This document shows positions 14,059 to 61,960 of a DNA stretch of 64,000 bases, piece after piece. Position 1 is the stretch's first letter; each line of letters opens with the position of its first letter. Source of the DNA: Mizuhopecten yessoensis (Eukaryota); assembly GCF_002113885.1 (NCBI RefSeq), contig NW_018406412.1:126899-190898 (forward strand), written 5' to 3'. Made by a program: the position numbers and the translations under genes. The notes beneath the pieces were generated by a model. It ran no database searches. It saw nothing but the letters and a program-made list of their open reading frames with translations, and was not told the origin of the DNA.

Positions 14059-14305
14059 ATATACATTTGATTTATTTTACAACAATCATGATAGAAGTTA
14101 TTCCAATTTGTATTCATCACTCTTATTAACCCGGCTGTTAGCGCCCGGGGTGTCTTAATGTGGGAGGAAACCGGAGTACCCGGAGAAAACCAAGGTGGTC
14201 GGGCAGGTGACCCCATATATACCCTTTCACGTCCGATCGGACAATCGAACCCCGACCGCCTTGGTGAGGTAAATGGGCTATCCACTGCGCCACCTGACCA
14301 CCCTG
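14059..14305 (-). mobile_element. V-domain-like SINE, full length
   Basis: GTGGGAGGAAACCGGAGTACCCGGAGAAAACC core on + (V-domain-like on minus). B-box GGGTTCGATT on minus. Aligns with the 7441, 25413 and 61721 copies. Confidence 0.85.
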
Positions 14306-16579: not shown

Positions 16580-17487
16580 CGTCAGTGACATCAATGCTGT
16601 CTTGTTTAGTTTGACGTCAGAGGCATCAATTTAGTCTTGTGTACTTCAGTGACATCAATGTTGTCTTGTGTACTTCAGTGACATCAATGTTGTCTTGTGT
16701 ACTTCAGAATCATCAATGAAGTCTTGTGTACTTCAGTGACATCAATGTTGTCTTGTGTACTTCAGAGACATCAATGTAGTTTTGTGTACTTCAGTGACTT
16801 CAATGTTGTCTTGTGTATTTCAGAGACATCAATGTAGCCTTGTGTACTTCAGTGGCATCAATTATGTCTTGTGTACTTCAGCGACATCAATGTAGTCTTG
16901 TGTTCTTCAGTGACATCAATGTAGTCCTGTGTATTTCAGTGGTATCAATGTTGGCTTGTGTACTTCAGTGACTTCAATGTTGTCTTGTGTCTTTCAGAGA
17001 CCTCAATGTAGTCTTGTGTTCTTCAGTGACATCAATGTAGTCTCGTGTACTTCAGTGGTATCAATGAAGTGTTGTGTACTTCAGTGGTATCAAGGTTGTC
17101 TTGTATACTTCAGTGACATCAATGTAGTCTTGTGCACTTCAGTGGTATCAATGTAGTGTTGCGTATTTCAGTGGTATCAATATAGTGTTGGGTACTTCAG
17201 AGACATCAATGTAGTTTTGTGTACTTCAGTGACTTCAATGTTGTCTTGTGTCTTTCAGTGACATCAATGTAGTCTCGTGTACTTCAGTGGTATCAATGTT
17301 GTCTTGTATACTTCAGTGACATCAATGTAGTCTTGTGTACTTCAGTGGTATCAATGTAGTGTTGTGTATTTCAGTGGTATCAATGTTGTCTTGTGTACTT
17401 CAGTGACATCAATGAAGTATTATGTACTTCAGTGGCATCAATTATGTCTTGTGTACTTCAGTGGCATCGATGTTGTCTTGTGTACTT
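16580..17487. repeat. 29-bp minisatellite (TTGTGTACTTCAGTGACATCAATGTTGTC), ~31 copies
   Basis: Direct periodicity, e.g. 16637 to 16666. Confidence 0.95.
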
Positions 17488-23600: not shown

Positions 23601-24085
23601 GCCCCCGTGTGGTGACACTATGGTAGGTTTTGCCCTAGTGTGTTGACACTGTGATGTGTTTAGCCCTCGTGTGTATACACTGTGATGTGTTTAGGCCTCG
23701 CGTGTCGACACTGTGATGTGTTTTGCCCTCGTGTGTTGACACTATGATGTGTTTTGCCCCCGTGTGGTGACACTATGGTATGTTTTGCCCTCGCGTGTTG
23801 ACAGTTATGTGTTTAGCCCTCGTGTGTTGACACTGTGATGTCTTTAGCCCTCGCGTGTCGACACTGTGATGTGTTTTGCCCCCGTGTGGTGACACTATGG
23901 TAGGTTTTGACCTAGTGTGTTGACACTGCGATGTGTTTTGCCCTCGAGTGTCGACACTGTGATGTGTTTTGCCCCCGTGTGGTGACACTATGGTAGGTTT
24001 TGACCTAGTGTGTTGACACCGCGATGTGTTTTGCCCTCGTGCGTTGACGCGGTGGTATATTTTGCTCTTGTGTGTTTGCGGTTGG
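20688..24085. repeat. 31-bp satellite (GACACTGTGATGTGTTTTGCCCTCGTGTGTT), ~110 copies
   Basis: Direct periodicity. A recurrent variant, CCCCGTGTGGTGACACTATGGTAGGTTTTGCCCTAG, dominates the 3' half. Confidence 0.95.
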
Positions 24086-25412: not shown

Positions 25413-25650
25413 AACTTTATTTATTTTACAACAATTTTGAAACAAGTTATTTCAACTGATATTAATCACTCTTGTTGGCCCGGATGTTAGCGCGTGGGTG
25501 GTCTTAGTGTGGGAGGAAACCGGAGTACCCGGAGAAAACCCAGGTGATCGGGCAGGCGACCCCATACCTTTTCACGGCCGATCGGGGAATCGAACCCTGG
25601 TCGCCTTGGTGAAGGCAAGTGCGCTATCTACTGCACCACCCGACCACCCG
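25413..25650 (-). mobile_element. V-domain-like SINE, full length
   Basis: Close match to the 14059 and 61721 copies (head, core and tail). An extra core fragment lies at 25863-25915. Confidence 0.85.
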
Positions 25651-29028: not shown

Positions 29029-30880
29029 CTTACTTCGAAGTAAGTGTAGGCCACGACCGCCACAGAGCATGTTTACTTCAGTAGTAAGTGTAGATTACGA
29101 CCGCTACAGAGCACGCTTACTTCAGTAGTAAGTGTAGGCCACGACCGCCAGAGAGCATGTTTACTTCAGTAGTAAGTGTAGGCCACGACCGCCACAGAGC
29201 ATGCTTACTTCAGTAGTAAGTGTAGGCCACGACCGCCACAGAGCATGTTTACTTCAGTGGTAAGTGTAGGCCACGACCGCCACAGAGCATGTTTACTTCA
29301 GTAGTAAGTGTAGGCCACGACCGCCACAGAGCATGTTTACTTCAGTAGTAAGTGTAGGCCACGACCGCCACAGAGCATGTTTACTTCAGTAGTAAGTGTA
29401 GGCCACGACCGCCACAGAGCATGTTTACTTCAGTAGTAAGTGTAGGCCACGACCGCCACAGAGCATGTTTACTTCAGTAGTAAGTGTAGGCCACGACCGC
29501 CACAGAGCATGTTTACTTCAGTAGTAAGTGTAGGCCACGACCGCCACAGAGCATGTTTACTTCAGTAGTAAGTGTAGGCCACGACCGCCACAGAGCATGT
29601 TTACTTCAGTAGTAAGTGTAGGCCACGACCGCCACAGAGCATGTTTACTTCAGTAGTAAGTGTAGGCCACGACCGCCACAGAGCATGTTTACTTCAGTAG
29701 TAAGTGTAGGCCACGACCGCCACAGAGCATGTTTACTTCAGTAGTAAGTGTAGGCCACGACCGCCACAGAGCATGTTTACTTCAGTAGTAAGTGTAGGCC
29801 ACGACCGCCACAGAGCATGTTTACTTCAGTAGTAAGTGTAGGCCACGACCGCCACAGAGCATGTTTACTTCAGTAGTAAGTGTAGGCCACGACCGCCACA
29901 GAGCATGTTTACTTCAGTAGTAAGTGTAGGCCACGACCGCCACAGAGCATGTTTACTTCAGTAGTAAGTGTAGGCCACGACCGCCACAGAGCATGTTTAC
30001 TTCAGTAGTAAGTGTAGGCCACGACCGCCACAGAGCATGTTTACTTCAGTAGTAAGTGTAGGCCACGACCGCCACAGAGCATGTTTACTTCAGTAGTAAG
30101 TGTAGGCCACGACCGCCACAGAGCATGTTTACTTCAGTAGTAAGTGTAGGCCACGACCGCCACAGAGCATGTTTACTTCAGTAGTAAGTGTAGGCCACGA
30201 CCGCCACAGAGCATGTTTACTTCAGTAGTAAGTGTAGGCCACGACCGCCACAGAGCATGTTTACTTCAGTAGTAAGTGTAGGCCACGACCGCCACAGAGC
30301 ATGTTTACTTCAGTAGTAAGTGTAGGCCACGACCGCCACAGAGCATGTTTACTTCAGTAGTAAGTGTAGGCCACGACCGCCACAGAGCATGTTTACTTCA
30401 GTAGTAAGTGTAGGCCACGACCGCCACAGAGCATGTTTACTTCAGTAGTAAGTGTAGGCCACGACCGCCACAGAGCATGTTTACTTCAGTAGTAAGTGTA
30501 GGCCACGACCGCCACAGAGCATGTTTACTTCAGTAGTAAGTGTAGGCCACGACCGCCACAGAGCATGTTTACTTCAGTAGTAAGTGTAGGCCACGACCGC
30601 CACAGAGCATGTTTACTTCAGTAGTAAGTGTAGGCCACGACCGCCACAGAACATGTTTACTTCAGTAGTAAGTGTAGGCCACGACCGCCACAGAGCACGC
30701 TTACTTCAGTAGTAAGTGTAGGCCACGACCGCTACAGAGCACGCTTACTTCAGTAGTTAGTGTAGGCCACGACCGCCACAGAGCATGTTTACTTCAGAGG
30801 TAAGTGTAGGCCACGACCGCCACAGAGCATGTTTACTTCAGTAGTAAGTGCAGGCCACGACCGCTACAGAGCATGCTTAC
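29029..30880. repeat. 44-bp minisatellite (TTACTTCAGTAGTAAGTGTAGGCCACGACCGCCACAGAGCATGT), ~42 copies, central block essentially identical
   Basis: Direct periodicity, 29161 to 29205 and onward. Variants occur only near the array edges. Confidence 0.97.
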
Positions 30881-34942: not shown

Positions 34943-36454
34943 AGCGTTCCTAAACTAACACAGAAAAACAGCGAAAGGTGAAGAGTGCCTATAAAACCTT
35001 ATTGTTACATTATTACAAATATTTAAAGGGTTTTCTATATTGAAGGGAAATAACCCTAGCACAAATTGCAGGAATTGTTTTTAATGTAGCATATGTCCTT
35101 AATTAAGAGAGATAACTCTGCCACATATTATAGTATGATATGAACGACATTCTAAGTAATAATCGTTTAGATGAAAATCTGCTATAAATAAAATAGATAA
35201 ATAAATCGGCGACAAATCAAAATATGAATTTAAGGTTTTCTCTATGTGCAAGGGAACCAACTCTAGCACAAATTGTAGGTTAAATGTTTAATGTAGCATA
35301 TGCCCTTAAGAGAGATAACTGAAATTCGGCTATAAATAAATAAATAAAATGAATAAACAAATGAATAAATAAAGTAAATCTACAAATTGGATGTTCGATG
35401 GAATAGAATTTCATAAACATTCCCAACTCAAAAAAAACCACCCAGAGGCTTCAGGTCGAAATGCTCGTTTAGTTACAGTCACCGCGTAATTATATATATA
35501 ATCGGATCGACGCATTCCTTACCTACAAATACCTGGTCATTGTTTAGTACACAAATACGACCAAAACTGGACTAAAAACACAGGCAGCATACACACACCC
35601 TTTCCTAATCTACCGACAAAAGTAAAACGTATTTACACTAAATCATCTATTCTTATGTTTATTTTAAACACGGCTAACGCTTACCTTCGCCTCTACACAG
35701 AGTCTAGAATATCCTTCAAACCCTTATATTGCGACATGAACAAATGGGGATTTAGGTAATAACAGAGCAAAGCCTTGCAATATGAACAATTGTATTTGAT
35801 TTTAAGTATTATTGTGTAGCGGAACTGGACTGGGTCGAGGTAGAACATCCGTCTAGCGTTCGGAGCGTTCAAAGTTCAAACCCCGGTCTGGCCTTTGCAT
35901 TTCTCTTTCTTCTGTTACAATTGCATCATTTAAATTCGCAAAAGAGAGTTCTATCCTTATGTTTTTGACCTGGAGTTTTCGCCCTTCATTTTAGATGATG
36001 AAGCAACCGAAAGAAGCTTTTTTTTCTGATTTAGAGAACTTCCCCTCTCAAGTTATGCCCTTTTTTCACTGGTCGTTCTCTAAGAAATTACTCTCCGAAT
36101 ACTAAGAAACTACACATGAGTGTTGGTGGAAATGTGAAGGTGTGCGTAACGTGTTTTATCTTCCGATTGGTCATCAAATAAGGCCGCCATGGCCTATGAT
36201 TGACTGTCACATACAAGGATTTACATTTTACGTCAAGGTGATGCCAACGGTCCCTATCTTTTTCTAGTCTTTCTCCATCTTTGTAAAAAATATATACAAG
36301 CATTTCATTTCCTTGTGGATTCTTTTCAATATATCATTTATGACAACAAGAACAATTTAGGGGACTGATGTAACGATTCTCGAAACAATTACAACTTGTT
36401 TTAGTAGAATGAAAAACTTAATGTTCATGCAAGTGTGTAGCAGTTATGGGCTGT

Positions 36455-39400
36455 TTAGACTACTGTGTGGCCCTTTATAAAATTGTTTCGTCGATGAGTT
36501 GTTAAGACTACCGTGTGGCCCTTTTTAAAATTGTTTCGTCGATGAGTTGTTAAGACTACCGTGTGGCCCTTTATAAAATTGTTTCGTCGATGAGTTGTTA
36601 AGACTACCGTGTGGCCCTGTATACAATTGTTGCATTGATAGGTTGTTAAGACTACCGTGTGGTCCGGTATAAAGTTGTTGTATTGATGAGTTGTTAAGAC
36701 TACCGTGTGGCCCTGTATTAAACTGTTGCGTTGATGGGTTGTTAAGACTATCGTATGGCCCTGTATTAAACTGTTGCGTTGTTGGGTTGTTATGACTACC
36801 GTGTGGTCCGGTATAAAGTTGTTGTATTGATGAGTTGTTAAGACTACCATGTGGTCTATATACAATTGTTGTATTGATGAGTTGTTAAGACTATCGTGTG
36901 GCCCTGTATTAAACAGTTGCGTTGATGGGTTGTTAAGACTCCATTGTGGCCCGGTATGGAATTGTTGCATTGATAGGTTGTTAACACTACCGTGTGGCCC
37001 TGTATAAAGTTGTTGCGTTGATGGGTTGTTAATACTACCGTGTGGCCATGTATGAAATTGTTGCATTGATTGTTTGTTAAGACTACCGTGTGGCCCGGTA
37101 TAAAGTTGTTGCGTTGATGGGTTGTTAATACTACCGTGTGACCATGTATGAAATTGTTGCATTGATTGGTTTTTAAGACTACCGTGTGGCCCTGTATAAA
37201 GTTGTTGCGTTGATGGGTTGTTAATACTCCCGTGTGGCCATGTATGGAATTGTTGCATTGATTGGTTGTTAAGACTACCGTGTGGCCCGGTATAAAGTTG
37301 TTGCGTGGATGGGTTGTTAATACTACCGTGTGGCCCTGTATGGAATTGTTGCATTGATTGGTTGTTAATACTACCGTGTGGCCTGGTATAAAATTATTTT
37401 GTTGATGGGTTGTTAACACTACCGGGTGGCCCGGTATGTAATTGTTTTGTTTATGGGTTGTTAATACTACCGTGTGGCCATGCATGGAATTGTTGCATTG
37501 ATTGGTTGTTAAGACTACCGTGTGGCCTGGTATAAAATTATTTTGTTGATGGGTTGTTAACACTACCGTGTGGCCCGGTATGTAATTGTTTTGTTGATGG
37601 GTTGTTAACACTACCGTGTGGCCCTGTATAAAGTTGTTGCGTTTATGGGTTGTTAATACTACCGTGTGGCCCGGTATCAAGTTGTTGCATTGTTTGGTTG
37701 TTTAGACTACCGTATGGCCCGGTATAAAATTGTTTTGTTGATGGGTCTTTAACGCTACCGTGTGGCCTTGTATAAAGTTGTTGTGTTGATTGGTTGTTAA
37801 TACTACCGTGTGACCCTGTATGGAATTATTGCATTGATGGGTTGTTAACACAACCATGTGGCCCTGTATAAAAGTGTTGCTTTGATGGGTTGCTAAGACA
37901 ACCGTGTGGCCCGGTATGAAATTGTTGCGTTGATGGGTCGTTAACACTACCGTGTGACCCTGTATAAAGTTGTTGCGTTGATGGGTTGTTAACACTACCG
38001 TGTGGCCTTGTATGAAATTGTTGTATTGATGAGTTGTTAAGACTACCGTGTGGCCCGGTATAAATTTGATATATTAATGGGCTGGTAAAACTACCGTGTA
38101 GCCCTGTATATGACTAGTTGTGTTGATGGGTTGTTAAGACTTCCTTGTGGCCCTGTATAAAATTGTTGTATTGATGAGTTGTAAAGACTACCGTGTGGCC
38201 CGGTATAAAATTGTTGCGTTGATGGGTTGTTAATACTACCGTGTCGCCATGTATGAAATTATAGCATTGATTGGTTGATAAGACTACCATGTGGCCCTGT
38301 ATAAAGTTGTTGCATTGATGGGTCTTTAACATTACCGTGTGACCCGGTATAAAATTGTTGCATTGATTGGTTGTTAAGACTACCGTGTGGCCCTGTATGG
38401 AATTGTTTCGTTGATGGGTTGTTAAGACTACCGTATGGCCCTGTATAAAGTTGTTGCGTTGATGGGTTGTTAAGACAACCGGTTGGCCCTGTATGGAATT
38501 GTTGCATTGATTGGTTTTTAAGACAACCGGTTGGCAATGTATGGAGTTATTGCATTGATGGGTTTTTAAGACTGCCATGTGGCCCGGTATGAAATTGTTG
38601 CATTGATTGGTTGATAAGACTACCGTATGGCCCGGTATAAAATTGTTTTGTTGATGGGTCGTTAACACTACCGTGTGGCCCGGTATGAAAGTGTTGCATT
38701 GATTGGTTGTTAAGACTACCGTATGGCCCGGTATAAAATTGTTTTGTTGATGGGTTGTTAATACTATCGTGTGGCCATGTATGAAATTGTTGCATTGATT
38801 AGTTGTTAAGAGTTCCTTGTGGCTTGGTATGGAATTATTGCATTGATGGGTTGTTAATACTACCGTGTGGCCCTGTATAAAGTTGTTGCGTTGATGGGTT
38901 GTTAACACTACCGTGTGGCCCGGTATGAAAGTGTTGCATTGATTGGATGTTAAGACTACCGTATGGCCCGGGATAAAATTGTTTTGTTGATGGGTCTTTA
39001 ACGCTACCGTGTGGCCTTGTATAAAGTTGTTGTGTTGATTGGTTGTTAATACTACTGTGTGGCTCTGTATAAAGTTGTTGCGTTGATGGGTTGTTAATAC
39101 TACCGTGTGGCCATGTATAAAATTGTTGCATTGATTGGTTGATAAGTCTACCGTGTGGCCCGGTCTCAAGTTGTTGCATTGATTGGTTGTTTAGACTACC
39201 GTATGGCCCAGTATAAAATTGTTTTGTTGATGGGTCTTTAACATTACCGTGTGACCCGGTATGAAATTGTTGCATTGATTGATTGTTAAGGCTACCGTGT
39301 GGCCCTGTATGGAATTGTTTCGTTGATTGGTTGATAAGACTACCGTGTGGCCCGGTATCGAGTTGTTGCATTGATTGGTTGATATGACTAACGTATGGCC

Positions 39401-41800
39401 TTGTATGACATTGTTGCATTGATTGGTTGTTAAGAGTTCCTTGTGACCCTGTAGAAAGTTGTTGCGTTGATGGGTTGTTAAAACACTACCGTGTGGCCTT
39501 GTATGAAATTGTTGTAGACATTGTTGCATTGGTTGGTTGTTAAGAGTACCGTGTGGCCCTGTATGACATTGTTGCATTGGTTGGTTGTTAAGAGTAACGT
39601 GTGGCCCTGTATAGCATTGTTGCATTGGTTGGTTGTTAAGACTACCGTGTGGCCCTGTATGACATTGTTGCATTGGTTGGTTGTTAAGACTACCGTGTTG
39701 CCCTGTATGAAATTGTTGCATTAGTTGGTTGTTAAGACTACCGTATGGCCCTGTATAAAGTTGTTGCGTTGATGGGTCGTTAAAACATGGGTTTTTAAGA
39801 CTAAAGTATGGCCCGGTATAAAATTGTTTTGTTGATGGGTCGTTAACACTACCGTGTGGGCCGGTATGAAAGTGTTGCATTGATTGGTTGTTAAGACTAC
39901 CGTGTGACCCTGTAGAAAGCTGTTGCGTTGATGGGTTGTTAACACTACCGTGTGGCCTTGTATGAAATTGTTGTAGACATCGTTGCATTGGTTGGTTGTT
40001 ACGAGTACCGTGTGGCCCTGTGTGACATTGTTGCATTGGGTGGTTGTGAATACTACCGTGTGGCCCTGTATCAAATTGTTGCATTGGTTGGGTGTTAAGA
40101 GTACCGTGTGGCCTTGTACGACATTGTTGCATTGGTTGTTTGTGAAGATGACCCTGTGGAAAGTTGTTGCGTTGATGGGTTGGTAAGACTATTGTTGCAT
40201 TGGTTGGTTGTGAAGATTACCTTTTGACCCGGTATGAAATTGTTGCATTGGTTGGGTGTTAAGAGTACCGTGTGGCCCGGTGTGACGTTGTTGCATTGGT
40301 TGGTGACCCTGTATAAAGTTGTTGCGTTCAATGGTTGTTAATACTACCGTGTGGCCTTGTATGAAATTGTTGTAGACATTGTTGCATTGGTTGTTTGTTA
40401 AGAGTACCGTGTGACCCTGCATGACATTGTTGCATTGGTTGTTTGTAAAGTGTTATGACTACCGTGTGGCCCTGTATCAAATTGTTGCATTGGTTGGGTG
40501 TTAAGAGTACCGTGTGGCCTTGTATGACATTGTTGCATTTGTTGGTTGTTAAGAGTACCTTGTGGCCCTGGATGACATTGTTGCGTTGGTTGGTTGTTAA
40601 GAGTACCGTGTGGCCCGGTGTCAAGTTGTTGCATTGATTGGTTGTTTAGACTACCGTATGGCCCGGTATAAAATTGTTGTATTGATGAGTTGTTAAGACT
40701 ACCGTGTGACCCTGTAGAAAGCTGTTGCGTTGATGGGTTGTTAAAACATGGGTTTTTAAGACTAAAGTATGGCCCGGTATAAAAGTGTTTTGTTGATGGG
40801 TCGTTAACACTACCGTGTTGGCCGGTATGCACGTGTTGCATTGATTGGTTGTTTAGACTGAGTTGTTAAGAATACCGTGTGGCCCTGTATAAAATTGTTG
40901 TATTGATGAGTTGTTAAGACTACCGTGTGCCCCTGTAGAAAGCTGTTGCGTTGATGGGTTGTTAAAACATGGGTTTTTAAGACTAAAGTATGGCCCGGTA
41001 TAAAAGTGTTTTGTTGATGGGTCGTTAACACTACCGTGTGGGCCGGTATGAAAGGGTTGCATTGATTGGTTGTTTAGACTGAGTTGTTAAGAATACCGTG
41101 TGGCCCGGTATACAATTGTTTTGTTGATGGGTCGTTAACCCCGGAATGAAATTGTTGCGTTGATGGGTTGTTAAAACTTCCTTGTGGCCCTGTATAAAAT
41201 TGTTGCATTGATTGGTTAATAAGACTACCGTGTGGCCCAGTATGACATTGTTGCATTTGTTGGTTGTTAAGAGTACCGTGTGGCCCGGTGTCAAGTTGTT
41301 GCATTGATTGGTTGTTTAGACTGAGTTGTTAAGAATACCGTGTGGCCCTTTATGAAATTGTTGCATTGGTTGTTTGTTAATACTACCGTGTGGCGATGTA
41401 TGAAATTGTTGCATTGGTTGGGTGTTAAGAGTACCGTGTGGCCCGGTGTGACATTGTTGCATTGGGTGGTTGTGAATACTACCGTGTGGCCCTGTATGAC
41501 ATTGTTGCATTGGTTTGTTGTTAAGACTACCGTTTGGCCCTGTATGACATTGTAGCATTGGTTGGTTGTTAAGAATACCGTGTGGCCCTGTATGAAATTG
41601 TTGCATTGGTTGTTTGTAAAGAGTACCGTGTGGCCCTGTATGACATTGTTGCATTGGTTGGTTGTTAATACTACCGTGTGACCCTGTATGACATTGTTGC
41701 ATTGGTTGGTTGTGAAGACTACCGTGTGACCCGGTATGAAATTGTTGCGTTGATGGGTTGGTAAGACTACCGTTTGGCCCTGTATGAAATTGTTGGGCTG
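36455..41800. repeat. 48-bp satellite (GTTAAGACTACCGTGTGGCCCTGTATAAAGTTGTTGCATTGATTGGTT-like), ~110 units
   Basis: Periodicity 36501 to 36549. The 16-aa repeats in minus-strand ORFs (QQFHTGPHGSLNNQSM and GHTVVLTTHQRNNFIQ) match. Confidence 0.95.
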
Positions 41801-44938: not shown

Positions 44939-46513
44939 ATGAATACGCCGGAACAGGAACTACGGCTGCAGGAAATCAATGACAGTTATGTTTCGATTCT
45001 ACTTCCGGTAATCATAGTCATTGGAGTGCTTATGGTGTTGGGTTTATTCGGAAATCCGCTTGTTATCTATTTTTACGGATGCCGAATGAAAACCACGGCA
45101 TCCTATATGTTTATAGTGACTTTGGCTATTTTCGACCTGTTATCTTGCGTGATATCTTTGCCCATGGAAATTTCAGACTTAATCAACTTTTACACTTTCG
45201 ACAGTGCTGCAACATGTCGCGCTCTTCGTTTTGTAAATTATTTTTCTAGTATAGGTTCCGGGACGACTCTAATTGCAATAGCGGTTGACCGATTCCGGAA
45301 AATATGCAAACCTTTCGACGCACAGATAACCGACAAAATGGCTAGATGGATAATTGTTGCTGTGATTGGTTTTGCGCTGTTTTGTTCGTGGCCTTCCATT
45401 TTTCTCAACACGGTAATTCAGAAAAATCTAACCGAGGATACATCTGTGGTTGCCCGGGATTGTACTCTAAATCCAGCTGATGACTACAAATTATTTGTGA
45501 CAATCTATAATTCGTTTCTTTTCCTGTGCTTTATCATCGTTTTCATAGTGCTTACAGCGTTGTATACGCTTGTTGGCAGACAACTATACAAGTTGCGTAG
45601 CTTCCGGTTCTACGCCACAGGCATCGAGAGAAACGTATCATCTGCTCGTCCTACGAGTTCGATGACGGTTGCGAGTGACATGACAAACTCCGAAGGCAGG
45701 AGCAGAACGGATGATTTGGCTGGTTTAGGGAATGACCTCAGGGACGGTTCACTTTCGCCTATCGGCGAAGACGACTATGCCAACCGTCGCCCTACCTCGG
45801 CCAATTCAATCGCGGTCAGTGCTCGGTCGCTGAAAATGGGTCCACACAAAGTTATCCCTCAAACAATGGATCCAGACCACGAGAAGGACATTGTAAATGG
45901 AGTATCGGGAAAAATTCGGCAAACTAGAAGTTTTACCGAAAAATCAGGCACCGAAAAAGTTCCGGAGAATATTCGTAGAGTAAGTTCGGCTACCATGGCG
46001 AACAAGGGGAAAGCATTTGGACAAAACAAGTTTGGAAGCCCTATGCGTGAAGGGTCTGCTACATCAAGGATGTCATACGCGTCCACAGCAAACTCCATGG
46101 CGGAAATAGAAACACGTGACGCGTACGCTTCAGGAAATATTGACCACCGAAAGGAAAAGATGCGATCGCAAAATATAAACACCAAGCGATACACGATAAT
46201 TGCTCTGTCCATAAGTATTGCGTTTGTTCTCAGCTTTTTGCCCTATTTGTGTCTAGTGATATGGTCAACGTTATTTATAACTTATGACCCGAACGAGTTC
46301 ACGCCAGCACAGCTTGTTGCCAGTGAGCTTTTTCACAGGTCATTTTTATTCAACTGCGCCTTAAATCCAATCATATACGGCTTCCTGAACACGGAATTCA
46401 AGAAAATGGTTTTCGGACAATGTGCAAAACTTTTCTGTTGCTGCTGCAAAACCAGACACAAAGAGGGAGATATGGCTCATGCAGAACTTAGTGGACTGTC
46501 CCGGTCTACGTAA
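44939..46513 (+). CDS. Class A orphan GPCR (CCK/orexin receptor-like), paralog of 53-1435, uninterrupted CDS, 524 aa
   Basis: FGNP, LAIFD, AVDRFRKIC, NPIIY and CCCCK motifs. Shares exact or near-exact blocks with the first GPCR: YFYGCRMKTT, QNINTKRYTII, SISIAFVLSFLPYL, YGFLNTEFK and ELSG. Confidence 0.95.
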   Translation: MNTPEQELRLQEINDSYVSILLPVIIVIGVLMVLGLFGNPLVIYFYGCRMKTTASYMFIVTLAIFDLLSCVISLPMEISDLINFYTFDSAATCRALRFVNYFSSIGSGTTLIAIAVDRFRKICKPFDAQITDKMARWIIVAVIGFALFCSWPSIFLNTVIQKNLTEDTSVVARDCTLNPADDYKLFVTIYNSFLFLCFIIVFIVLTALYTLVGRQLYKLRSFRFYATGIERNVSSARPTSSMTVASDMTNSEGRSRTDDLAGLGNDLRDGSLSPIGEDDYANRRPTSANSIAVSARSLKMGPHKVIPQTMDPDHEKDIVNGVSGKIRQTRSFTEKSGTEKVPENIRRVSSATMANKGKAFGQNKFGSPMREGSATSRMSYASTANSMAEIETRDAYASGNIDHRKEKMRSQNINTKRYTIIALSISIAFVLSFLPYLCLVIWSTLFITYDPNEFTPAQLVASELFHRSFLFNCALNPIIYGFLNTEFKKMVFGQCAKLFCCCCKTRHKEGDMAHAELSGLSRST

Positions 46514-49402: not shown

Positions 49403-50577
49403 CAGATTCGTTCTCATTCTCAAGCATGGATTCTTTGCTTAAGCTCAATTTCTTGTTCTTGTTATAACTTAATAAATAAAACATGTTTTGTCAATGATTT
49501 GTAAACATTTTGAAGAGACTTAAAGCCAAATACTGTTTTCAATGTTTACATTTGACCTTTTGATCGTTTGACATGTACAAGGATTCGTAAAAAAACACTT
49601 TTGACTTATCTCCCCTAGAACTCACAGTCTCCCGATTTCATACATCAAATATGCAAGTACAGTATATATAAATTTATTAAGGATCACCGTTCCGCTGCCA
49701 AAAATGAAACTATGCATTCGAAACTGATTTTTTCGCAATGATTATAACTTTGATAAAAAAATGAAAAAGGAAAAAGAGGTATGCCTTGCAGGTACTTAAA
49801 CAAAAGTGTTCAACAAGTGTTCTGGGTGTTAAAAAGCGTGGTTACACAAAAATTCGAAAAATGGACATCGAATTGTTATACTGTCGTTCTAACCGACTGA
49901 GCTACTTGGTCTACGGAAGTGTCACGGACAAACTGTGCTGCAGTTATATCCAAACCAAATTAAGGGGAAGTAATTGTAAAAACGAAAATTCACGGTGCAG
50001 TGGGGCAGGGATCCTTAAGAATGCTTATATCGATAAGAATTAATCAAGATCGTCAATGATATGACAATACTTAACCAATCATACAGCAAAGAATTTGGTC
50101 AGAAATAAGTCGAGTTCAAATGAACTTGTTCGTCCTTAGGTGTCATCATTTGTAGGTTAAGTATTTAAATCGCAAGTAGGGGTCATTGCAATCGTTACGT
50201 TTGCATATACATAACTGTAATCGTATTACTAGCAATACTGTTATTTTTTTGTAGTCTTTTCTAATATATGTTTGGATTTGGACACAATATCCTGACGCAA
50301 CAACTGGAAAACACCACATTTTTATTGATTCGTTTCTGCTCATTGTAAAGATAAAGACATTAAGTACAGAAAGTTTATTGAAAACCATCCTCGATATTCC
50401 AGGGGTTACGAAGTTACGATTATGGAGTAGCCGGGGATGACTGAAAACGTGAACATGAAACGGTTTCTGATTATTGTTAAGATATAGGCGGCAAGTACAA
50501 AAAGTTTACTGAAAACGTAATCGGCCATATTTGTCACTTCCGAGTTAGTCCAGGTCATCGCGGTGGATCCTTGTTTA

Positions 50578-50859
50578 AGGGCCTGTCACACCTAGCCGGT
50601 TTGGGTCCCCGTAGCTATACTGGAGCACGGCGATTTTCGGGGCTCGATACTAGACCGGTAGTACATTGTCAACACATCGTCAGAACATCGGCGAAACAAA
50701 TTACTAACGGGAGGCGACGGTCGAAAATTTTGAACTTGCTCAAAAATTTCCGCCGTTGCGCTGCAGGAGCAAGTGCTTTTGCAAGTAGTTTCTGGCCGTT
50801 CGATTTTTTTGCTCCGGTTTAGTCCCGGCGAGGTACATTGGTAGTGTGTAACATGCCCT
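50578..50859. mobile_element. Non-autonomous TIR element (Harbinger-like)
   Basis: AGGGCCTGTCACAC ... GTGTAACATGCCCT imperfect TIRs with TTA on both flanks. Confidence 0.55.
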
Positions 50860-51117
50860 TTAGTTGCTGTATAGATATAAATAAGCAACTACTGATGTAC
50901 AGAATGTTTTCTCATCTTTTGACAAATATCATTAGCTGACTGTTGAAGGGAATAGAAGTGTTGAAGTACCAGAGACACACGGAGGCGAAGACATTATCAG
51001 AAAATTTCAAAAATTTAAGGATTCAAACTATTGTGATTAGATTCACGTGTATCTACTGGTTTATTATATAGATAAATGTTATATGATTTTCTATGTATTT
51101 TTTAATTACATAACGTT

Positions 51118-54100
51118 CCCAACACTTCGAAAGGATACAAGTAGGAGAAATGTGTTGCTATCACAACAATGTGATTTTGAAACATTGATATCTCGTTGGC
51201 GAGACTGTGATGATGTAATGTTGCCAACTCTTGTTTTCATACTTATGATATGACAAATACCTACAATAACAAAAACTTAGCTGTTGAGGCCAACCAACAC
51301 TACAAAAGAATACTCTGCTCCTGGTCGCTCGACAGTGGCAAGACAAGAAAACTCCTGACTGAGTGTAGAATTCACTTTTGAAGTAGGACTGCGCAAAAAC
51401 AACAGGAATGACTGCAATTGTGATGGAAACAAAACACACGAACCCTAAGCTAATGTAATCAGTATAGGAAGTCCATTGAAGGTATTATCGCGAAGAACAG
51501 CTATTTTATTGTGTAATAGATGGAGGGATTCAAGTACAGACAGTCCACTGAAGGTATTATCGTGAAGAAGCTGTATTTGATTGTGTGATAGATGGAAGGT
51601 TTCAAGTACAGAAAGTCCCCTGAAGGTATTATCGCGAAGAACAGCTATTTGATCATGTAATGGATGGAGGGATTCAAGTACAGACAGTCCACTGTGTGAT
51701 AGATGGAGGGTTTCAAGTACAGACAGTTCACTGAAGGAATTATCACGAAGAACCTATATTTGGTTGTGTGATAGTGGAGGGATTCAAGTACACACAGTCC
51801 ACTGACGGTATTATCACGAAGAACATGTATTTGGTTGTGTGATTGATGGAGGGTTTCAAGTACAGACAGGGCACTGAAGATATTATCGTGAAAGTATTAT
51901 CGCGAAGAACAGCAATTTGATCGTGTGATAGATTGAGGGTAGATGGAGGGTTTCAGGTACAGACAGTCCAGAGCATGCATTATCGCGAAGAACCTGCATT
52001 TGGTTGTGTGATAGTGGAGGGAGTCAAGTACAGACAGTCCGCTGAAGGCATTATCGCGAAGAACAGCTATTTTATTGTGTAATAGATGGAGGGATTCAAT
52101 TACAGACATCCACTGAAACTGAATGTATTGCCGCGAAGAACATCAATTTGATCATGTGATAGATGGATGGATTCAAATACAGACAGTTAGTACAGACAGT
52201 CCACTCAAGGTATTATATCATGTGATAGATGGATGGATTCAAATACAGACAGTTAGTACAGACAGTCCACTGCAGGTACTATTGTGTGATAGATGGAAGG
52301 TTTCAGGTACAGAAAGTCCACTGATGGTATTATCGCGAAGAAACCCCCTTTGATCGTGTGATAGATGGAGGGGTTCAAGTACAGACAGTTCACTGAAGTT
52401 ATTATCACGAAGAACCTATATTTGGTTGTGTGATAGATGGTGCGCTTTAAGTTCAGACAGCGCAACACAGCTATTTGATTGTGCGATAGATGGAGGGATT
52501 CAAGGACAGAAAGTCCATTGAAGGTATTATCGCGAACAACAGATATCTGATTGTGTGATAGATGGACGGATTTAAGTACAGACAGTGCCCTGAAGATATT
52601 ATCGCGAAAAACCTGTATTTGGTTGTTTGATAGATGGAGGGTTTCAGGTACAGACAGTCCACAGCATGTATTATCGCGAATAACCTGTATTTGGTTGTTT
52701 GATAGATGGAGGGTTTCAGTTACAGACAGTCCAGAGCATTTATTATCGCGAAGAACCTGCATTTGGTTGTGTGATAGTGGAGGGAGTCAAGTACAGACAG
52801 TCCGCTGAAGGTATTATCGCGTAGAACCTGTATAGACAGTTCACTGAAGGAATTATCACGAAGAACCTATATTTGGTTGTGTGATAGTGGAGGGAGTCAA
52901 GTACAGACAGTCCCCTGTAGGTATTATCGCAAAGAACAGCTATTTGATCGTGTAATGGATGGAGGGATTCAAGTAAAGACAGTCCGCTGAAGGTATTATC
53001 GCGAACAACAGCTATTTGATTGTATGATAGATGGAGGGATTTAAGTACAGACAGTGCACTGAAGATATTATCGTGAAGAAGTTGTATTTGAGTGTGTGAT
53101 AGATGCAGAGATTCAAGTACAGACAGTTCACTGAAGGAATTATCACGAAGAACCTATATTTGGTTGTGTGATAGATGGTGCGCTTTAAGTTCAGACAGCG
53201 CAACACAGCTATTTGATTGTGCGATAGATGGAGGGATTCAAGTAAAGACAGTCCGCTGAAGGCATTATCGCGAAGAACAGATATCTGATCGTGTGATAGA
53301 TGGAGGGGTTCAAGTACAGACAGTTCGCTGAAGGCATTATCGCGAAGAACCTGCATTTGGTTGTGTGATAGTGGAGGGATTCAAGTACAAACAGTCCATT
53401 GGATGAATAATCACGAAGAACAGCTATTTGCTCATGTAATGGATAAAGGGATTCAAGTACAGAGAGTCCACTGTAGGTATTATCGCAAAGAACAGCTATT
53501 TGATAGTGTGATAGATGGAGGGTTTCAAGTACAGACAGTTCACTGAAGTTATTATCACGAAGAACCGCTATCTGATTGTGTGATAGATGGACGGATTTAA
53601 GTACAGACAGTGCACTGAAGGTATTATCACGAAGAAGCTGTATTTGGTTGTGTGATAGTGGAGGGATTCAAGTACAAACAGTCCATTGGTGGTATTATCA
53701 CGAAGAAGTTGTATTTGAGTGTGTGATAGATGCAGAGATTCAAGTACACACAGTCCACTGACGGTATTATCACGAAGAACATGTATTTGGTTGTGTGAGG
53801 TGGGGAGGGTTTCAAGTACTGACAGTCTACTGAAGGTATTATCGCGTAGAACCTGTATAGACAGTTCACTGAAGGTTTTATCACGAAGAACCTGTATTTG
53901 GTTGTGTGATAGATGGAGGGTTTCAGGTACAGACAGTCCAGAGCATGTATTATCGCGAAGAACCTGTATTTGGTTGTGTGATAGATGGAGGGTTTCAAGT
54001 ACTGACAGTCCACTGAAGGTATTATCGCGAAGAACAGCTATTTGATCGTGTGATAGATGGAGGGATTTAAGTACAGACAGTGCACTGAAGATATTATCGC

Positions 54101-57100
54101 GAAAAACCTGTATTTGGTTGTGTGATAGATAGAGGGTTTCAAGAACAGACAGTCCACTGAAGGTATTATCGCGAAAAACCTGTATTTGGTTGTGTGATAG
54201 ATGGAGAGATTCAAGTACAGACAGTCCACTGAAGGCATTTTTGCGAAGATGCTGTATTTGATTGTGTGATAGATGGAGAGATTCAAGTACAGACAGTCCA
54301 CTGAATGTATTGTCGCGAAGAACAGCTATTTGATCGTGTGATAGTTGGAGGGATTCAAGTACAGACAGTCCACTGAATGTATTATCGCGAAGAACAGATA
54401 TCTGATTGTGTGATAGATGGAGGGATTCAATTACAGACATCCACTGAAGGTATAATCGCGAAAAACTGCTATTTGATCGTGTGATAGATGGAGGGATTCA
54501 AGTACAGACAGTCCACTGAAGGTATTATCACGAAGAACAGCTATTTGATAGTGTGATAGTTGGAGGGATTCAAGTACAGACAGTGAACTGAAGGGAAGAA
54601 CAGATATCTGATTGTGGGATAGATGGAGAGATTCAAGTACAGAAAGTCCACTGGAGGTATTATCACGAAGAACAGCTATTTGATCGTGTGATAGATGGAG
54701 GGCTTCAAGTACAGACAGTCCACTGAAGGATTTAACGCGAAGAACAGCTATTTTATTGTGTGATAGATGGAGGGTTTCAAGTACAGAGAGTCCACTGGAG
54801 GTATTATCACGAAGAACAGCTATTTGATTGTGTGATAGATGGAGGGTTTCAAATACAGACAGTGCACTGAAGGTATTATCGCGAAGAACAGCTATTTGAT
54901 TGTGTGATAGATAGAGGGATTCAAGTACAGACAGTCCACTGGAGGTATTATCGCGAAGAACAGCTATTTTATTGTGTGATAGATGGAGGGTTTCAAGTAC
55001 AGACAGTCCACTGGAGGTATTATCGCGAAGAACAGCTATTTGATCGTGTGATAGATGGAGGGATTCAAGTACAGACATTCCACTGAAGGTTTTATCGCGA
55101 AGAACCTGTATTTGGTTGTGTGATAGATGGAGGGATTTAAGTTCAGACAGTCCACTGAAGGTATTATCGCGAGGAACAGTTATTTGATCATGTAATTTAT
55201 TGAGGGAATCAAGTACAGACATTCCACTGAAGGTATTATCACGAAGAACAGCTATTTGATTGTGTGATAGATGGAAGGATTCAAGTACAGACATTCCACT
55301 GAAGGTATTATCGCGAAGAACCTGTATTTGGTTGTGTGATAGATGGTGGGATTTAAGTTCAGACAGTGCACTGAAGGTATTATCGCGAGGAACAGTTATT
55401 TGATCATGTCATTTATGGAGGGATGCAAGTACAGACAGTGCACTGAAGATATTATCGTGAAAAAGCTGTATTTTATTGTGTGATAGATGGAAGGTTTCAA
55501 GTACAGAAAGTCCACTGAAGGTATTATCGCGTAGAACCTGTATTTGGTTGTTTGATAGATGGAGGGTTTCAAGTACAGACAGTCCACTGCAAGTACTATT
55601 GCGAAGAAGCTGTATTTGGTTGTGTGATAGATGGAGGGATTCAAGTACAGACAGTCCACTGAAGGTATTATCGCGAAGAACAGCTATTTGATCGTGTGAT
55701 AGATTGAGGGATGCAAGTACCGACCTCCACTGAAGGTATTATCGCGAAGAACCTATATTTTGTTGTGTAATAGATAGAGGGTTTCAAGTACAGACAGTCC
55801 ACTGAAGGTATTATCGCGGAGATGCTGTATTTGATTGTGTGATAGATGGAGAGATTCAAGTACACACAGTCCACTGAAGGTATTATCACGATGAACAGCG
55901 ATTTGATTATGTGATAGATGGAGGGATTCAAGTACAGACAGTCCGCTGAAGGTATTATCGCGAAGAACATAGATTGAGGGATGCAAGTACCGACCTCCAC
56001 TGAAGGAATTATCGCGAAGATGCTGTATTTGATTGTGTGATAGATGGAGTGATTTAAGTACAGACAGTCCACTAAAGGTATTATCGCGAGGAACAGTTAT
56101 TTGATCATGTAATTTATTGAGGGATTCAAGTACAAACAGTCCATTGAAGGTATTATCACGAAGAACAGCTATTTGATTGTGTGATAGATGGAGGGATGCA
56201 AGTACAGACATCCACTGAAGGTATTTTCGCAAAGAACAGCTATTTGATCGTGTGATAGATGAAGAGATTCAAGTACAGACAGTCCACTGGAGGTATTATC
56301 ACGAAGAAGCTGTATTTGATCGTGTATTAGATGGAGGGATTCAAGTACAGACAGTGAACTGAAGGTATTATCTCGAAGAACAGCTATTTGATCGTGTGAT
56401 AGATGGAGGGATTCAATTACAGACAGTGCACTGAAGATATTATCGTGAAAAAACTGTATTTGATTGTGTGATAGATGGAAGGTTTCAAGTACAGAAAGTC
56501 CACTGAAAGGTATTATTGTGAAGAAGCTGTATTTGGTTGTGTGATAGATGGAGGGATTCAAGTACAGACAGTCCACTGAAGGTATTATCGCGAAGAACAG
56601 CTATTTGATCGTGTGATAGATTGAGGGATGTAAGTACCGACCTCCACTGAAGGTATTATCGCGAAGAACCTGTATTTTGTTGTGTGATAGATAGAGGGTT
56701 TCAAGTACAGACAGTCCACTGAAGGTATTATCGCGAAGAACCTGTATTTGGTTGTGTGATAGATGGAGGGTTTCAAGTACAGACAGTCCACTGAAGGTAT
56801 TATCGCGAAGATGCTGTATTTGATTGTGTGATAGATGGAGTGATTCAAGTACAGACAGTCCACTGAAGGTATTATCACGAAGAAGCTGTATTTGTTTGTG
56901 TGATAGATGGAGAGATTCAAGTACAGACAGTCCACTGAAGGATTTAACGCGAAGAACAGCTATTTGATTGTGTGATAGATGGAGGGTTTCAAGTACATAC
57001 ATTGTACTGAAGGTATTATCGTGAAGAAGCTGTATTTGGTTGTGTGATAGATGGAGGGTTTCAAGTACAGACATTCCACTGAAGGTATTATCACGAAGAA

Positions 57101-60100
57101 CAGCTATTAGATCGTGTGATAGATGGAGGGATTCAAGTACAGACATTCAACTGAAGGTATTATCACGAAGAACAGCTATTTGATTGTGTGATAGATGGAG
57201 GGATTCAAGTACAGACATCCACTGAAGGTATTATCGCGAAGAACAGCTATTTGATCGTGTGATAGATGGAGGGTTTCAAGTACAGACAGGTCACTGCAGG
57301 TACTATTGCGAAGAAGCTGTATTTGGTTGTGTGATAGATGGAGGGATTCAAGTACAGACAGTCCACTGAATGTATTATCGCGAAGAACAGCTATTTGATT
57401 GTGTGATAGATGGAGGGATTCAAGTACAGACAACCACTGAAGGTATTATCGCGAAGAACAGCTATTTGATCGTGTGATAGATGGAGGGATTTAAGTACAG
57501 ACATCCACTGAAGGTATTATCGCGAAGAACAGCTATTTGATCGTGTGATAGATGGAGGGTTTCAAGTACAGACAGGTCACTGCAGGTACTATTGCGAAGA
57601 AGCTGTATTTGGTTGTGTGATAGATGGAGGGATTCAAGTACAGACAGTCCACTGAATGTATTATCGCGAAGAACAGCTATTTGATTGTGTGATAGATGGA
57701 GGGATTCAAGTACAGACATCCACTGAAGGTATTATCGCGAAGAACAGCTATTTGATCGTGTGATAGATGGAGGGTTTCAAGTACAGACAGGTCACTGCAG
57801 GTACTATTGCGAAGAAGCTGTATTTGGTTGTGTGATAGATGGAGGGATTCAAGTACAGACAGTCCACTGAATGTATTATCGCGAAGAACAGCTATTTGAT
57901 TGTGTGATAGATGGAGGGATTCAAGTACAGACATCCACTGAAGGTATTATCGCGAAGAACAGCTATTTGATTGTGTGATAGATGGAGGGATTCAAGTACA
58001 GACATCCACTGAAGGTATTATCGCGAAGAACAGCTATTTGATCGTGTGATAGATGGAGGGTTTCAAGTACAGACAGGTCACTGCAGGTACTATTGCGAAG
58101 AAGCTGTATTTGGTTGTGTGATAGATGGAGGGATTCAAGTACAGACAGTCCACTGAATGTATTATCGCGAAGAACAGCTATCTGATTGTGTGATAGATGG
58201 AGGGATTCAAGTACAGACATCCACTGAAGGTATAATCGCGAAGAACTGCTATTTGGTCATGTGATAGATGGAGGGATTCAAGTACAGACAGTCCGCTGAA
58301 GGTATTATCGCGAAGAACAGCTATTTGATCGTGTGATAGATGGAGGGTTTCAAGTACAGACAGTCCACTGCAGGTACTATTGCGAAGAAGCTGTATTTGG
58401 TTGTGTGATAGATGGAGGGATTCAAGTACAGACAGTCCACTGAATGTATTGTCGCGAAGAACAGCTATTTGATCATGTGATAGATGGAGGGATTCAAGTA
58501 CAGACATCCACTGAAGGTATTATCGCGAAGAACAGCGATTTGATTTTGTGATAGATGGAGGGTTTCAAGTACAGACAGGTCACTGCAGGTACTATAGCGA
58601 AGAAGCTGTATTTGGTTGTGTGATAGATGGAGGGATTCAAGTACAGACAGTCCACTGAATGTATTGTCGCGAAGAACAGCTATTTGATCATGTGATAGAT
58701 GGAGGGATTCAAGTACAGACATCCACTGAAGGTATTATCGCGAAGAACAGCGATTTGATTTTGTGATAGATGGAGGGTTTCAAGTACAGACAGGTCACTG
58801 CAGGTACTATAGCGAAGAAGCTGTATTTGGTTGTGTGATAGATGGAGGGATTCAAGTACAAACAGTCCACTGAATGTATTATCGCGAAGAACAGATATCT
58901 GATTGTGTGATAGATGGAGGGATTCAAGTACAGACATCCACTGAAGGTATAATCGCGAAGAACTGCTATTTGATCGTGTGATAGATGGAGGGATTCAAAT
59001 ACAGACAGTTCGCTGAAGGTATAATCGCGAAGAACAGCTATTTGCTCGTGTGATAGATGGAGGGTTTCAAGTACAGACAGTCCACTGCAGGTACTATTGC
59101 GAAGAAGCTGTATTTGGTTGTGTGATAGATGGAGGGATTCAAGTACAGACAGTCCACTGAATGTATTGTCGCGAAGAACAGCTATTTGATCATGTGATAG
59201 ATGGAGTGATTCAAGTACAGACAGTCCACTGAAGGTATTATCACGATGAACAGCGATTTGATTATGTGATAGATGGAGGGATTCAAGTACAGACAGTCCA
59301 CTGAAAGTATAATCACGAAGAACTGCTATTTGGTCATGTGATAAATAGAGGGATTCAAGTACAGACAGTCCGCTGAAGGTATTATCGCGAAGAACTGCTA
59401 TTTGGTCATGTGATAGATGGAGGGATTCAAGTACAGACAGTCCGCTGAAGGCATTATCGCGAGGAACAGCTATTTGATCGTGTGATAGATGGAGGGTTTC
59501 AAGTACAGACAGTCCACTGCAGGTACTATTGCGAAGAAGCTGTATTTGGTTGTGTGATAGATGGAGGGATTCAAGTACAGACAGTCCACTGAATGTATTG
59601 TCGCGAAGAACAGCTATTTGATCATGTGATAGATGGAGGGATTCAAGTACAGACATCCACTGAAGGTATAATCGCGAAGAACTGCTATTTGGTCATGTGA
59701 TAGATGGAGGGATTCAAGTACAGACAGTCCGCTGAAGGCATTATCGCGAAGAACAGCTATTTGATCGTGTGATAGATGGAGGGTTTCAAGTGCAGACAGT
59801 CCACTGCAGGTACTATTGCGAAGAAGCTGTATTTGGTCATGTGATAGATGGAGGGATTCAAGTACAGACAGTCCGCTGAAGGCATTATCGCGAGGAACAG
59901 CTATTTGATCGTGTGATAGATGGAGGGTTTCAAGTACAGACAGTCCACTGCAGGTACTATTGCGAAGAAGCTGTATTTGGTTGTGTGATAGATGGAGGGA
60001 TTCAAGTACAGACAGTCCACTGAATGTATTGTCGCGAAGAACAGCTATTTGATCATGTGATAGATGGAGGGATTCAAGTACAGACATCCACTGAAGGTAT

Positions 60101-61166
60101 AATCGCGAAGAACTGCTATTTGGTCATGTGATAGATGGAGGGATTCAAGTACAGACAGTCCGCTGAAGGCATTATCGCGAAGAACAGCTATTTGATCGTG
60201 TGATAGATGGAGGGTTTCAAGTGCAGACAGTCCACTGCAGGTACTATTGCGAAGAAGCTGTATTTGGTTGTGTGATAGATGGAGGGATTCAAGTACAGAC
60301 AGTCCACTGAATGTATTGTCGCGAAGAACAGCTATTTGATCATGTGATAGATGGAGGGATTCAAGTACAGACATCCACTGAAGGTATTATCGCGAAGAAC
60401 AGCGATTTGATTATGTGATAGATGGAGGGATTCAAGTACAGACAGTCCACTGAAAGTATAATCACGAAGAACTGCTATTTGGGCATGTGATAAATAGAGG
60501 GATTCAAGTACAGACAGTCCGCTGAAGGTATTATCGTGAAGAACAGCTATTTGATTGTGTGATAGATGGAGGGTTCTAAGTACTGACAGTCCACTGAAGG
60601 TATTATCGCGAAGAAGCTGTATTTGGTTGTGTGATAGATGGAGGGATTCAAGTACAGACAGTCCACTGCCGGTATTATTGCGAAGAACATCGTGTGATAG
60701 ACCGATGCCTCTAGCGTAGACTGTCCTCCTAAAAACATTATCATGAAGAACAGGTAAAAGATTTTGTGATAGACAGAGAAACGTTAGTACAGACAGTTCA
60801 CTAAAGAAGGTATCGGTATAGGATACATCTTGAAACTTGAGGGGTTATATAATCCAGTGATAACATTATCAGCCACGGTAGACATATCTGTTATTACTAG
60901 ATAACTGATGCAGAACAAGTGCGAAAAGTCCCGGAAACGTGAATACACCGGTTAAGTAACGATTGAAATGTTCTCGAAAGGACAGTAAAGCGTACAGAAG
61001 TCAGTTGACTGTTGCTGTAGTTGATCGTTAAACCAATACACATACAAAACTATTAACCGGTCTTGGCACACGACGACTCATCGTAACTAGAGCCAAGGCA
61101 TTGGATGACTCCCTCACAAACTGGTGATATCGGAATGTTGTAACCCTCCTCAGATTGGCAGTAACT
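51118..61166 (-). pseudogene. Decayed GRL101/RXFP-like (type C LGR) receptor: LDLa - LRRNT - massively expanded LRR - (hinge/TM1-3 deleted) - TM4-TM6
   Basis: Manual minus-strand translation. 61163-61068 YCQSEEGYNIPISPVCEGVIQCLGSSYDESSC (LDLa-like), then in frame ..G**FCMCIGLTINYSNSQLTSVR (LRRNT-like), divergent LRRs and the array. 51439-51118 reads VCFVSITIAVIPVVFAQSYFKSEFYTQSGVFL / LPL / ERPGAEYSFVVLVGLNS*VFVIVGICHII..SRQRDINVSK / NHIVVIATHFSYLYPFEVLG, with frameshifts at the slashes. Confidence 0.8.
51471..60810 (-). repeat. 72-bp tandem array encoding 24-aa typical-class LRRs (LSVLESLHLSHNQIAVLRDNTFSG), ~125-130 units
   Basis: Fits LxxLxxLxLxxNxIxxLxxxxFxx. Open stretches at 53568-54440, 54431-55294 and 58709-59656 are broken by recurrent 1-bp indels. 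Confidence 0.95.
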
Positions 61167-61324
61167 GGTCCCAATGACGTGCGCCTATTAGTTTAAATGC
61201 GGAAACGTGTAATTAGATCGTTTGTACTTTGGATCCTGTTGATAGTCTGGTGAGTATAAATTTGTTACATTGTTTTGAAGGTCTTTTCTATGACCAGCCA
61301 CTGAAACAATACAGGGATAGCAAA

Positions 61325-61571
61325 ATGTGGCCACTTTGTATTTTCCTCTTCGTGGTAGTGCTGTCACAAAGTATTAACCGTGATGCCGTGAATGATGCTT
61401 TGGTAGAGCAAAGAATATTGGAAAATATTCGACCAATATTGGACGTATATGTGTCAGATAGACTGGAGCGAAACCAAAACGTGATTGAAAAACTTCAGCA
61501 AAGAATCGGTCATTTAGAAAATCGATATGAAGAAAGGATAAACTTGTTGGAAACCTACAAGAGCACAAAAG
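61325..61571 (+). CDS. First coding exon of a secreted protein (signal peptide plus coiled coil)
   Basis: ATG in AAAATGT context. MWPLCIFLFVVVLSQS is signal-peptide-like, and LERNQNVIEKLQQRIGHLENRYEERINLLE is heptad-like. Donor AG|GTAAC after 61571 (phase 1). Confidence 0.75.
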
Positions 61572-61720
61572 GTAACGCATATTTAACATGTATATGTTAT
61601 AAATCGGAATGCATGTACTAGGTAAATTGGGGAACATGGGTATAATCTGACTTAAAGAACACGCTCTTCACTTTGATGACAATAACATTCTAGGAACATT
61701 TCTCTCTGGGATGCTATAAA

Positions 61721-61960
61721 GGTTGTCGGGTGGTGTAGTGGATAGCACATTTGCCTTTCACCAAGGCGGCCGTGGTTTGATTCCCCGATCGGACGTGAAA
61801 AGGTGTAGGGTCACCTGCCCGACCACTTGGGTTTTCTCCGGGTACTCCGGTTTCCTCTTACACTAAGACCCCATGCGCGCTAACGTCCGGGCCAACAAGA
61901 GTGATTAATATAAGTTGAAATAACTTTTTTCATAATTGTTACAGACAATAAATAAAGTTA
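61721..61960 (+). mobile_element. V-domain-like SINE, full length, intronic
   Basis: A box TGGTGTAGTGG, B box GGTTTGATTCCC, core GGGTTTTCTCCGGGTACTCCGGTTTCCTC and AATAAATAAAGTT tail. Confidence 0.85.

Follow-up and report, generated by a model that had tools for sequence, protein, structure and literature searches.

A dead GRL101/RXFP-type receptor gene of the scallop Mizuhopecten yessoensis as the likely source of a 9-kb minisatellite of LRR units

A 9-kb array of 72-bp units in M. yessoensis was analysed and is likely to lie in an unprocessed type C LGR pseudogene, within which unequal exchange went on multiplying the LRR unit once the gene had died; today it would be a single-locus, gene-derived minisatellite without a protein product. 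The window, meaning the whole stretch of DNA analysed, comprised 64,000 nucleotides of contig NW_018406412.1 (assembly GCF_002113885.1, positions 126,899 to 190,898 of the forward strand) and contained no N. An earlier note, made from the letters of the window, had proposed that a coding LRR amplified satellite-style inside its own GRL101/RXFP-type gene. This was supported, as both flanks belonged to one receptor subfamily and the unit was closest to the LRRs of a member of that subfamily, the M. yessoensis paralogue L016. The accompanying picture of a receptor with a giant ectodomain and parent domains still readable was too strong; the locus is a dead, internally deleted pseudogene with a neutral array and a TM relic that is deleted on a second allele. 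The features are listed in Table 1.

Table 1. Features of the array and its flanks, with positions in the window
Feature	Position	Strand	Remarks
Possible coding relic upstream of the LDLa-like module	61190..61553	(-)	after good splice acceptor at ~61554; frame shared with LDLa
Degenerate LDLa-like module	61068..61163	(-)	several cysteines missing; alignment to GRL101-like locus L019
LRRNT cap	60984..61055	(-)	two in-frame stops at 61055-61050; CMCIG common to Argopecten paralogue L015
First divergent LRRs, frameshifted	60701..60983	(-)	homologous frame SRFRDF...ISYLVITD, then the frame running into the array
72-bp LRR-unit array	51462..60700	(-)	9,239 bp; ~130 units, 33 with length not a multiple of 3; old at TM end, young at 5' end
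Youngest array zone	57166..60425	(-)	block duplications, 97-100% identical, offsets 215-1867 bp, spreading one 1-bp deletion
Deletion joint, LRR fused to second half of TM4	51440..51462	(-)	~760 bp missing (last LRRs, hinge, TM1-TM3)
308-bp segment absent on second allele	51142..51449		runs X1 and X5 showed the shortened allele alone; run X13 showed both
TM4-TM6 relic of a scallop GRL101-like 7TM	51111..51439	(-)	one stop (51279-51277); deletions of 1, 7, 9 and 2 bp
Dead splice donor, conserved post-TM6 intron of the family	51113..51119	(-)	GT to GA at 51118-51117

The array on the minus strand corresponded to 128-131 unit equivalents, in agreement with the 125-130 units in a coding LRR context described earlier. 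The unit consensus was open in one frame only, was free of stops and read as a typical 24-aa LRR, from which the conserved proline of the LPxxxF motif was already missing. Pfam LRR_8 matched the two longest open stretches (E 1e-51 and 1e-69), the longest of which in the array region was 327 aa. Stops were present in four full-length units, and the frame was broken by length in 33 units. Distinct sequences accounted for 95 of the 117 array units. The units stood head to tail, were arranged in higher-order blocks and were more alike within the locus (identity 0.86) than to any paralogue unit (0.75 at most), which is the behaviour of a minisatellite; a length of 9 kb at what is apparently one locus likewise speaks for a minisatellite rather than a classical satellite. 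No further copy of the unit was found elsewhere in the 64-kb window, and the read depth, although rough, was of the order of 10^2 copies and below the level of a major satellite, so the unit is probably not a genome-wide satellite, as had been considered. Homologue searches with the LRR stretches returned only generic LRR proteins, 30-47% identical, which did not match the flanks. In the annotation of M. yessoensis assembly GCA_002113885.2, a 290-aa product without Pfam match is placed inside the array.

The TM relic was identified by frameshift-aware alignment. Its best match was the M. yessoensis GRL101-like protein P0258, with 52% identity over 114 columns of TM4-TM6; the score was 211, compared with 31±3 for shuffled sequences, and four scallop GRL101-like proteins ranked first. 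In the tree, the relic was grouped with these four proteins (support 92/88). The nearest sequences were OWF45547/XP_021363614 of M. yessoensis and XP_069106644, XP_069134569 and XP_069110041 of A. irradians. A degenerate motif scan of metagenome contigs yielded six animal 7TM exons, of which the one tested had RXFP1 as its best PDB match (E 4e-29). The profile of these six exons matched 51484-51164 of the window at E 1e-6, together with two further collinear pieces, and a profile search returned 120 relatives; genuine relatives were obtained by these two routes alone. The sequence pieces were searched separately, never as a joined read-through protein, with X placed at the breaks in one local tree. 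With the TM piece, a homologue search, in a method requiring shared 5-mers and similar length, was blank, and a PDB search gave noise. Pfam showed no match to LDLa, LRRNT or 7tm_1 on the flank pieces. Of the checks suggested in the earlier note, alignment placed both flanks among GRL101-like receptors and the three Pfam models were silent. The 7TM fragment claimed there is far beyond chance but consists of TM4-TM6 only; no match to the hinge, TM1-TM3 or the TM7 exon was found within the window.

Homology of the relic stopped at the TM6 donor of the family, and the DNA that follows resembled the start of an intron. Since this donor is dead, the locus is a genomic copy and not an intronless one, contrary to the statement that no introns were visible. 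An intronless retrocopy (processed pseudogene) was considered and rejected because TM6 is not joined to TM7 and is followed by intron-like sequence. A giant intact receptor with about 130 LRRs was rejected as well, given that about 760 bp and the TM7 exon are missing, that stops and frameshifts occur in both flanks and that 33 units break the frame. Just downstream of the TM relic, at 50545-50880, there is a high-copy short repeat with a read depth far above single copy; it is possibly a MITE and may have disrupted the TM7 exon region.

At the other end, the cysteine-rich piece (61163-61068) and the CMCIG cap (~61046) described earlier, like the TM motifs (51430-51111), were all found where they had been placed. 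The 5' flank was aligned to the N-terminus of the 1,001-aa open exon of the intact Argopecten paralogue L015 with a score of 98 versus 28±4 (tblastx E 4e-6), which upheld the LRRNT cap and the divergent LRRs. One LRR, quoted as TFPGLFALVLHQLSSNN, had been read in the wrong frame; the differences from the DNA of L015 fell at third codon positions of the SRFRDF... frame and fix that frame instead. The flank reads in frame into the array. For the LDLa module, the claim was sustained in part. The region scored 53 against the LDLa and LRRNT of GRL101-like locus L019, ahead of every other tile among 426 in the window and of each of 300 shuffles; against another GRL101-like locus, L018, it reached only 40, which was not significant. 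Its top PDB match was LDLa module CR8 of LRP1 at E 0.68, and no Pfam match was obtained. Its identity as LDLa is moderately supported. One module was seen, and a degenerate one, compared with the multiple modules of GRL101 proper (type C2); no exons further upstream were found. The stretch 61553-61056, which takes in this module and the sequence before it, contained 3 stops in 166 codons versus 9.5 expected (p about 0.01, for the best of three frames and uncorrected), suggesting a possible coding relic. No homologue of this relic (61190-61553) was found, Pfam and the ESM Atlas being blank for it; the ESM Atlas was blank for two pieces.

Four paralogue loci were available for comparison, three of Argopecten (L013-L015) and L016 of M. 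yessoensis, each with LRRs and TM1-TM6 in one long exon-like stretch. They carried about 9, 10, 14 and 21 regular LRRs, so the norm of about ten or fewer assumed in the earlier note does not apply to this subfamily. LGRs of basal animals are reported to have 7-26 LRRs, with 20-26 in sponges and comb jellies (PMC4079206). Homogenised 72-bp runs were observed in three of the four loci, with 2.5 copies in L013, 2.9 in L014 and 10.3 in L016, the last with a 144-bp period. Amplification at the present locus is thus the extreme of a family trait. The window unit was closest to the LRR units of L016, with a mean identity of 68% (best 75%) versus 48-51% to the others, and the longest exact word common to window and paralogue units was 19 bp. 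The unit tree set all window units apart from those of L016, although the node in question was hardly supported at all. A frameshift near the hinge was seen in two of the four paralogues, L013 and L016, which may be broken too.

Several further observations were made on these loci. In L016 (XP_021363614), the 10-copy 72-bp LRR array is found in 22274-23040, and a frameshift with a loss of about 20 codons is present where the array meets the hinge; the gene model bridges this frameshift by a very short intron. The exon before the LRRs of L016 (21018-21152) encodes a Cys-rich segment that is TNFR-like rather than LDLa-like in look, which suggests that the N-terminal cap differs within the subfamily. 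The Argopecten gene models (L013:8904-10795, L014:8399-10720 and L015:7652-10654) cover the 7TM only, and open frames of 774 and 1,001 codons at the Argopecten loci include LRRs absent from them. In L013 the frame is shifted near TM1, and a gypsy-like insertion lies upstream.

The array showed an age gradient. Differences between nearest-neighbour units rose towards the TM end, from 0.5 of 69 sites in the 5' third through 2.6 to 4.7 in the third next to the TM relic (0.8%, 3.8% and 6.8%). In the youngest zone, duplicated blocks were found at offsets of 215, 286, 431, 501, 717 and 1867 bp, and one 1-bp deletion recurred in 17-18 units, 12-13 of them within 57166-60425. One array block of 439 bp was a 100% identical duplicate. 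As the whole 9 kb rests on one assembly and is spanned by no read or contig, such a duplicate means that the exact copy number may be off.

Selection was measured by non-redundant pairwise comparisons of observed units only. The pN/pS of the array was 0.83-0.88, not different from 1, and 55 of 190 amino-acid changes (29%; neutral share 30%) fell at seven LRR core positions. In paralogue L016 the core was avoided, with 2 of 46 changes (Fisher p 2e-4 versus the array), and the LRRs varied freely outside it (pN/pS about 1.1). Neutral pN/pS and unprotected core positions indicate that the array is not maintained as protein. Of 150 sites that do not vary among the four paralogues, 24 (16%) were changed in the TM relic, a value to be taken as an upper bound because some of the change could be older than the death of the gene. 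Copies made before that death should, at this level of decay, be less alike than the present units, so that most present copies are probably younger and most unit duplications would postdate the death of the gene.

Contigs crossing the junction between array and TM relic were recovered in three DNA runs, each from a different study. One contig of run X13 led from the relic into array sequence with 0 differences, at half the depth. The allele lacking 51142-51449 was carried in all three DNA runs and was the only allele seen in two of the three animals. The junction is therefore real, and the TM relic is still being eroded. Summed array depth was roughly 70-300 times single-copy, which is too rough for a copy number as such but is compatible with units numbering in the order of 10^2. 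The unit with the 1-bp deletion was seen only in X13 contigs, a hint that the make-up of the array differs between animals. In one RNA run, about 19% of which was read, neither the TM relic nor the array units compared drew any reads.

Taken together, the findings suggest the following course. In a scallop-specific GRL101/RXFP-like subfamily with all LRRs and TM1-TM6 in one large exon, nothing separates one 72-bp LRR codon block from the next, so that these blocks form direct repeats. Living members change their LRR number and homogenise short LRR runs, as the counts of 9-21 LRRs and the 2.5-, 2.9- and 10.3-copy blocks illustrate. One copy died through the stops, frameshifts, 760-bp internal deletion and dead donor recorded here. 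Without selection on length or frame, units that were already similar would then have exchanged unequally up to about 130 copies, with later growth by multi-unit blocks that spread a frameshift too. Unequal crossing-over or slippage is the presumed mechanism, the order of the first steps is likewise deduced, and loss of selection would be the reason for the tenfold excess of units.

The reverse order, in which the LRR tract ran away in a receptor that was still functional or marginally so, and the expansion killed the gene before deletion and decay set in, is unlikely. It would account for a consensus that is still a near-canonical LRR without stop, and L016, homogenised under constraint and frameshifted where its own array ends on the 3' side, offers a parallel. 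Unit-to-unit distances that fall short of the decay seen in the TM relic are at odds with it, as are the unprotected LRR core positions and the proline already lost from the LPxxxF motif of the consensus. A wider proposal, that the single-exon LRR tracts of scallop GRL101-like receptors are a recognition module varying fast in length and sequence, and that the array either serves living paralogues as a cassette reservoir differing between haplotypes or is what remains of a receptor that was once translated with tens to more than 100 near-identical LRRs, is decidedly unlikely. Donation in particular, by which the array would serve as a store of LRR cassettes and diversify the receptor family through gene conversion into living paralogues, is highly improbable. 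GRL101-like clusters of Biomphalaria are hypervariable and linked to parasite resistance (PMC12297450), and free variation outside the core of paralogue LRRs would suit such a role, but even the best window unit is just 75% identical to any paralogue unit seen, with a longest exact common word of 19 bp, and the units decay neutrally and spread frameshifts.

An assembly artefact or chimera, in which a fragmented assembly would have joined two different LGR relics across a repeat or inflated the array there, was judged very unlikely. No read spans the array, identical blocks occur in its young zone and the two flanks are closest to different paralogues, the 5' cap resembling L015 whereas the TM and the LRR unit resemble L013/L016; on this comparison of sequences a chimeric origin of the locus itself is conceivable. 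Against an artefact, the 3' junction was recovered by contigs in three runs of three studies, 0.90-0.97 of the 5'-flank words were present in 14 runs from 4 studies and that flank runs in frame into the array; moreover, 95 of 117 units are distinct, and the read depth, roughly estimated, again points to the order of 10^2 copies. Low shares of 5'-flank words in RNA-like runs would fit a dispersed repeat of about 240 bp near 61720-61960. Four copies of this repeat, 76-87% identical, lie in the window (61720-61960, 25413-25648, 14081-14302 and 7433-7666), and a related stretch is present in Argopecten locus L014.

A probable post-mortem expansion of a receptor repeat can be set beside several known systems. 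With type C LGRs (RXFP1/2 as C1, molluscan GRL101-like receptors as C2), the locus has in common the order putative LDLa-like module, LRRNT, LRRs and rhodopsin 7TM, about 50% identity in TM4-TM6 and the position of the post-TM6 intron. It differs in being dead, in lacking the hinge, TM1-TM3 and TM7, and in having about 130 units versus 9-21 in the paralogues and 7-26 reported for LGRs of basal animals (PMC4079206); the array descends from a type C LGR but is not itself a receptor of that class. Coding tandem repeats under concerted evolution, such as protein domain repeats (PMC5100051), likewise have a domain-length, frame-preserving unit that is homogenised and varied in number by recombination. 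The scallop array, in contrast, is free of selection, amplifies frameshifted units and is about ten times longer than the arrays of its living relatives. PRDM9 zinc fingers and mucin VNTRs are further coding tandem repeats under concerted evolution. The 'Mirage' minisatellites of amphioxus (PMC3087553) are also seeded from gene sequence and show local, concerted turnover, but the Mirage unit spans an exon-intron boundary of a working host gene, whereas the scallop unit lies wholly within an exon, corresponds to one protein repeat and belongs to a dead gene. Satellites with higher-order repeats seeded from rDNA spacers or transposons (PMC5615363) share the amplification of monomers followed by multi-monomer blocks and differ in their seed, which is a protein-coding domain here.

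In the literature, which was covered in part and gives no proof of novelty, neither this locus nor any LRR-derived array within a pseudogene was found to have been described. The origin of a tandem array is usually inferred once its seed has already been erased. Here the seed, the parent gene and smaller stages in relatives are all legible, from 2.5-3 homogenised units in Argopecten through 10 core-constrained units in a M. yessoensis paralogue to about 130 neutral units in the dead copy. With this series one can test compactly whether a coding repeat, once released from selection, turns into a minisatellite. The locus also draws attention to a scallop receptor subfamily that has been overlooked; its LRR tracts are variable and lie in single exons, and public annotation often truncates its members to the 7TM part. 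No new receptor or mechanism is revealed; such a process is to be expected and has no function, but it can be read here unusually well.

Other features of the window were recorded. Two intact single-ORF rhodopsin-family GPCRs are encoded on the plus strand at 53-1435 and 44939-46513 (Pfam 7tm_1 E 1e-31 and 7e-31), the latter clustering with an alpha-2B adrenergic receptor-like protein of M. yessoensis. A 5.3-kb array of 48-bp units at 36446-41795 has long open minus-strand frames, with Pfam matches that are repeat noise. Its 16-aa unit recalls the H-loop of ABCA transporters; no ABCA-type gene was seen in the flanks of that array. Six more minisatellites, with units of 20, 84, 22, 29, 31 and 44 bp, are located at 4042-4703, 9445-10041, 12044-12626, 16617-17487, 20689-24076 and 29030-30880, respectively, and a window so rich in arrays indicates that amplification is common locally or genome-wide.
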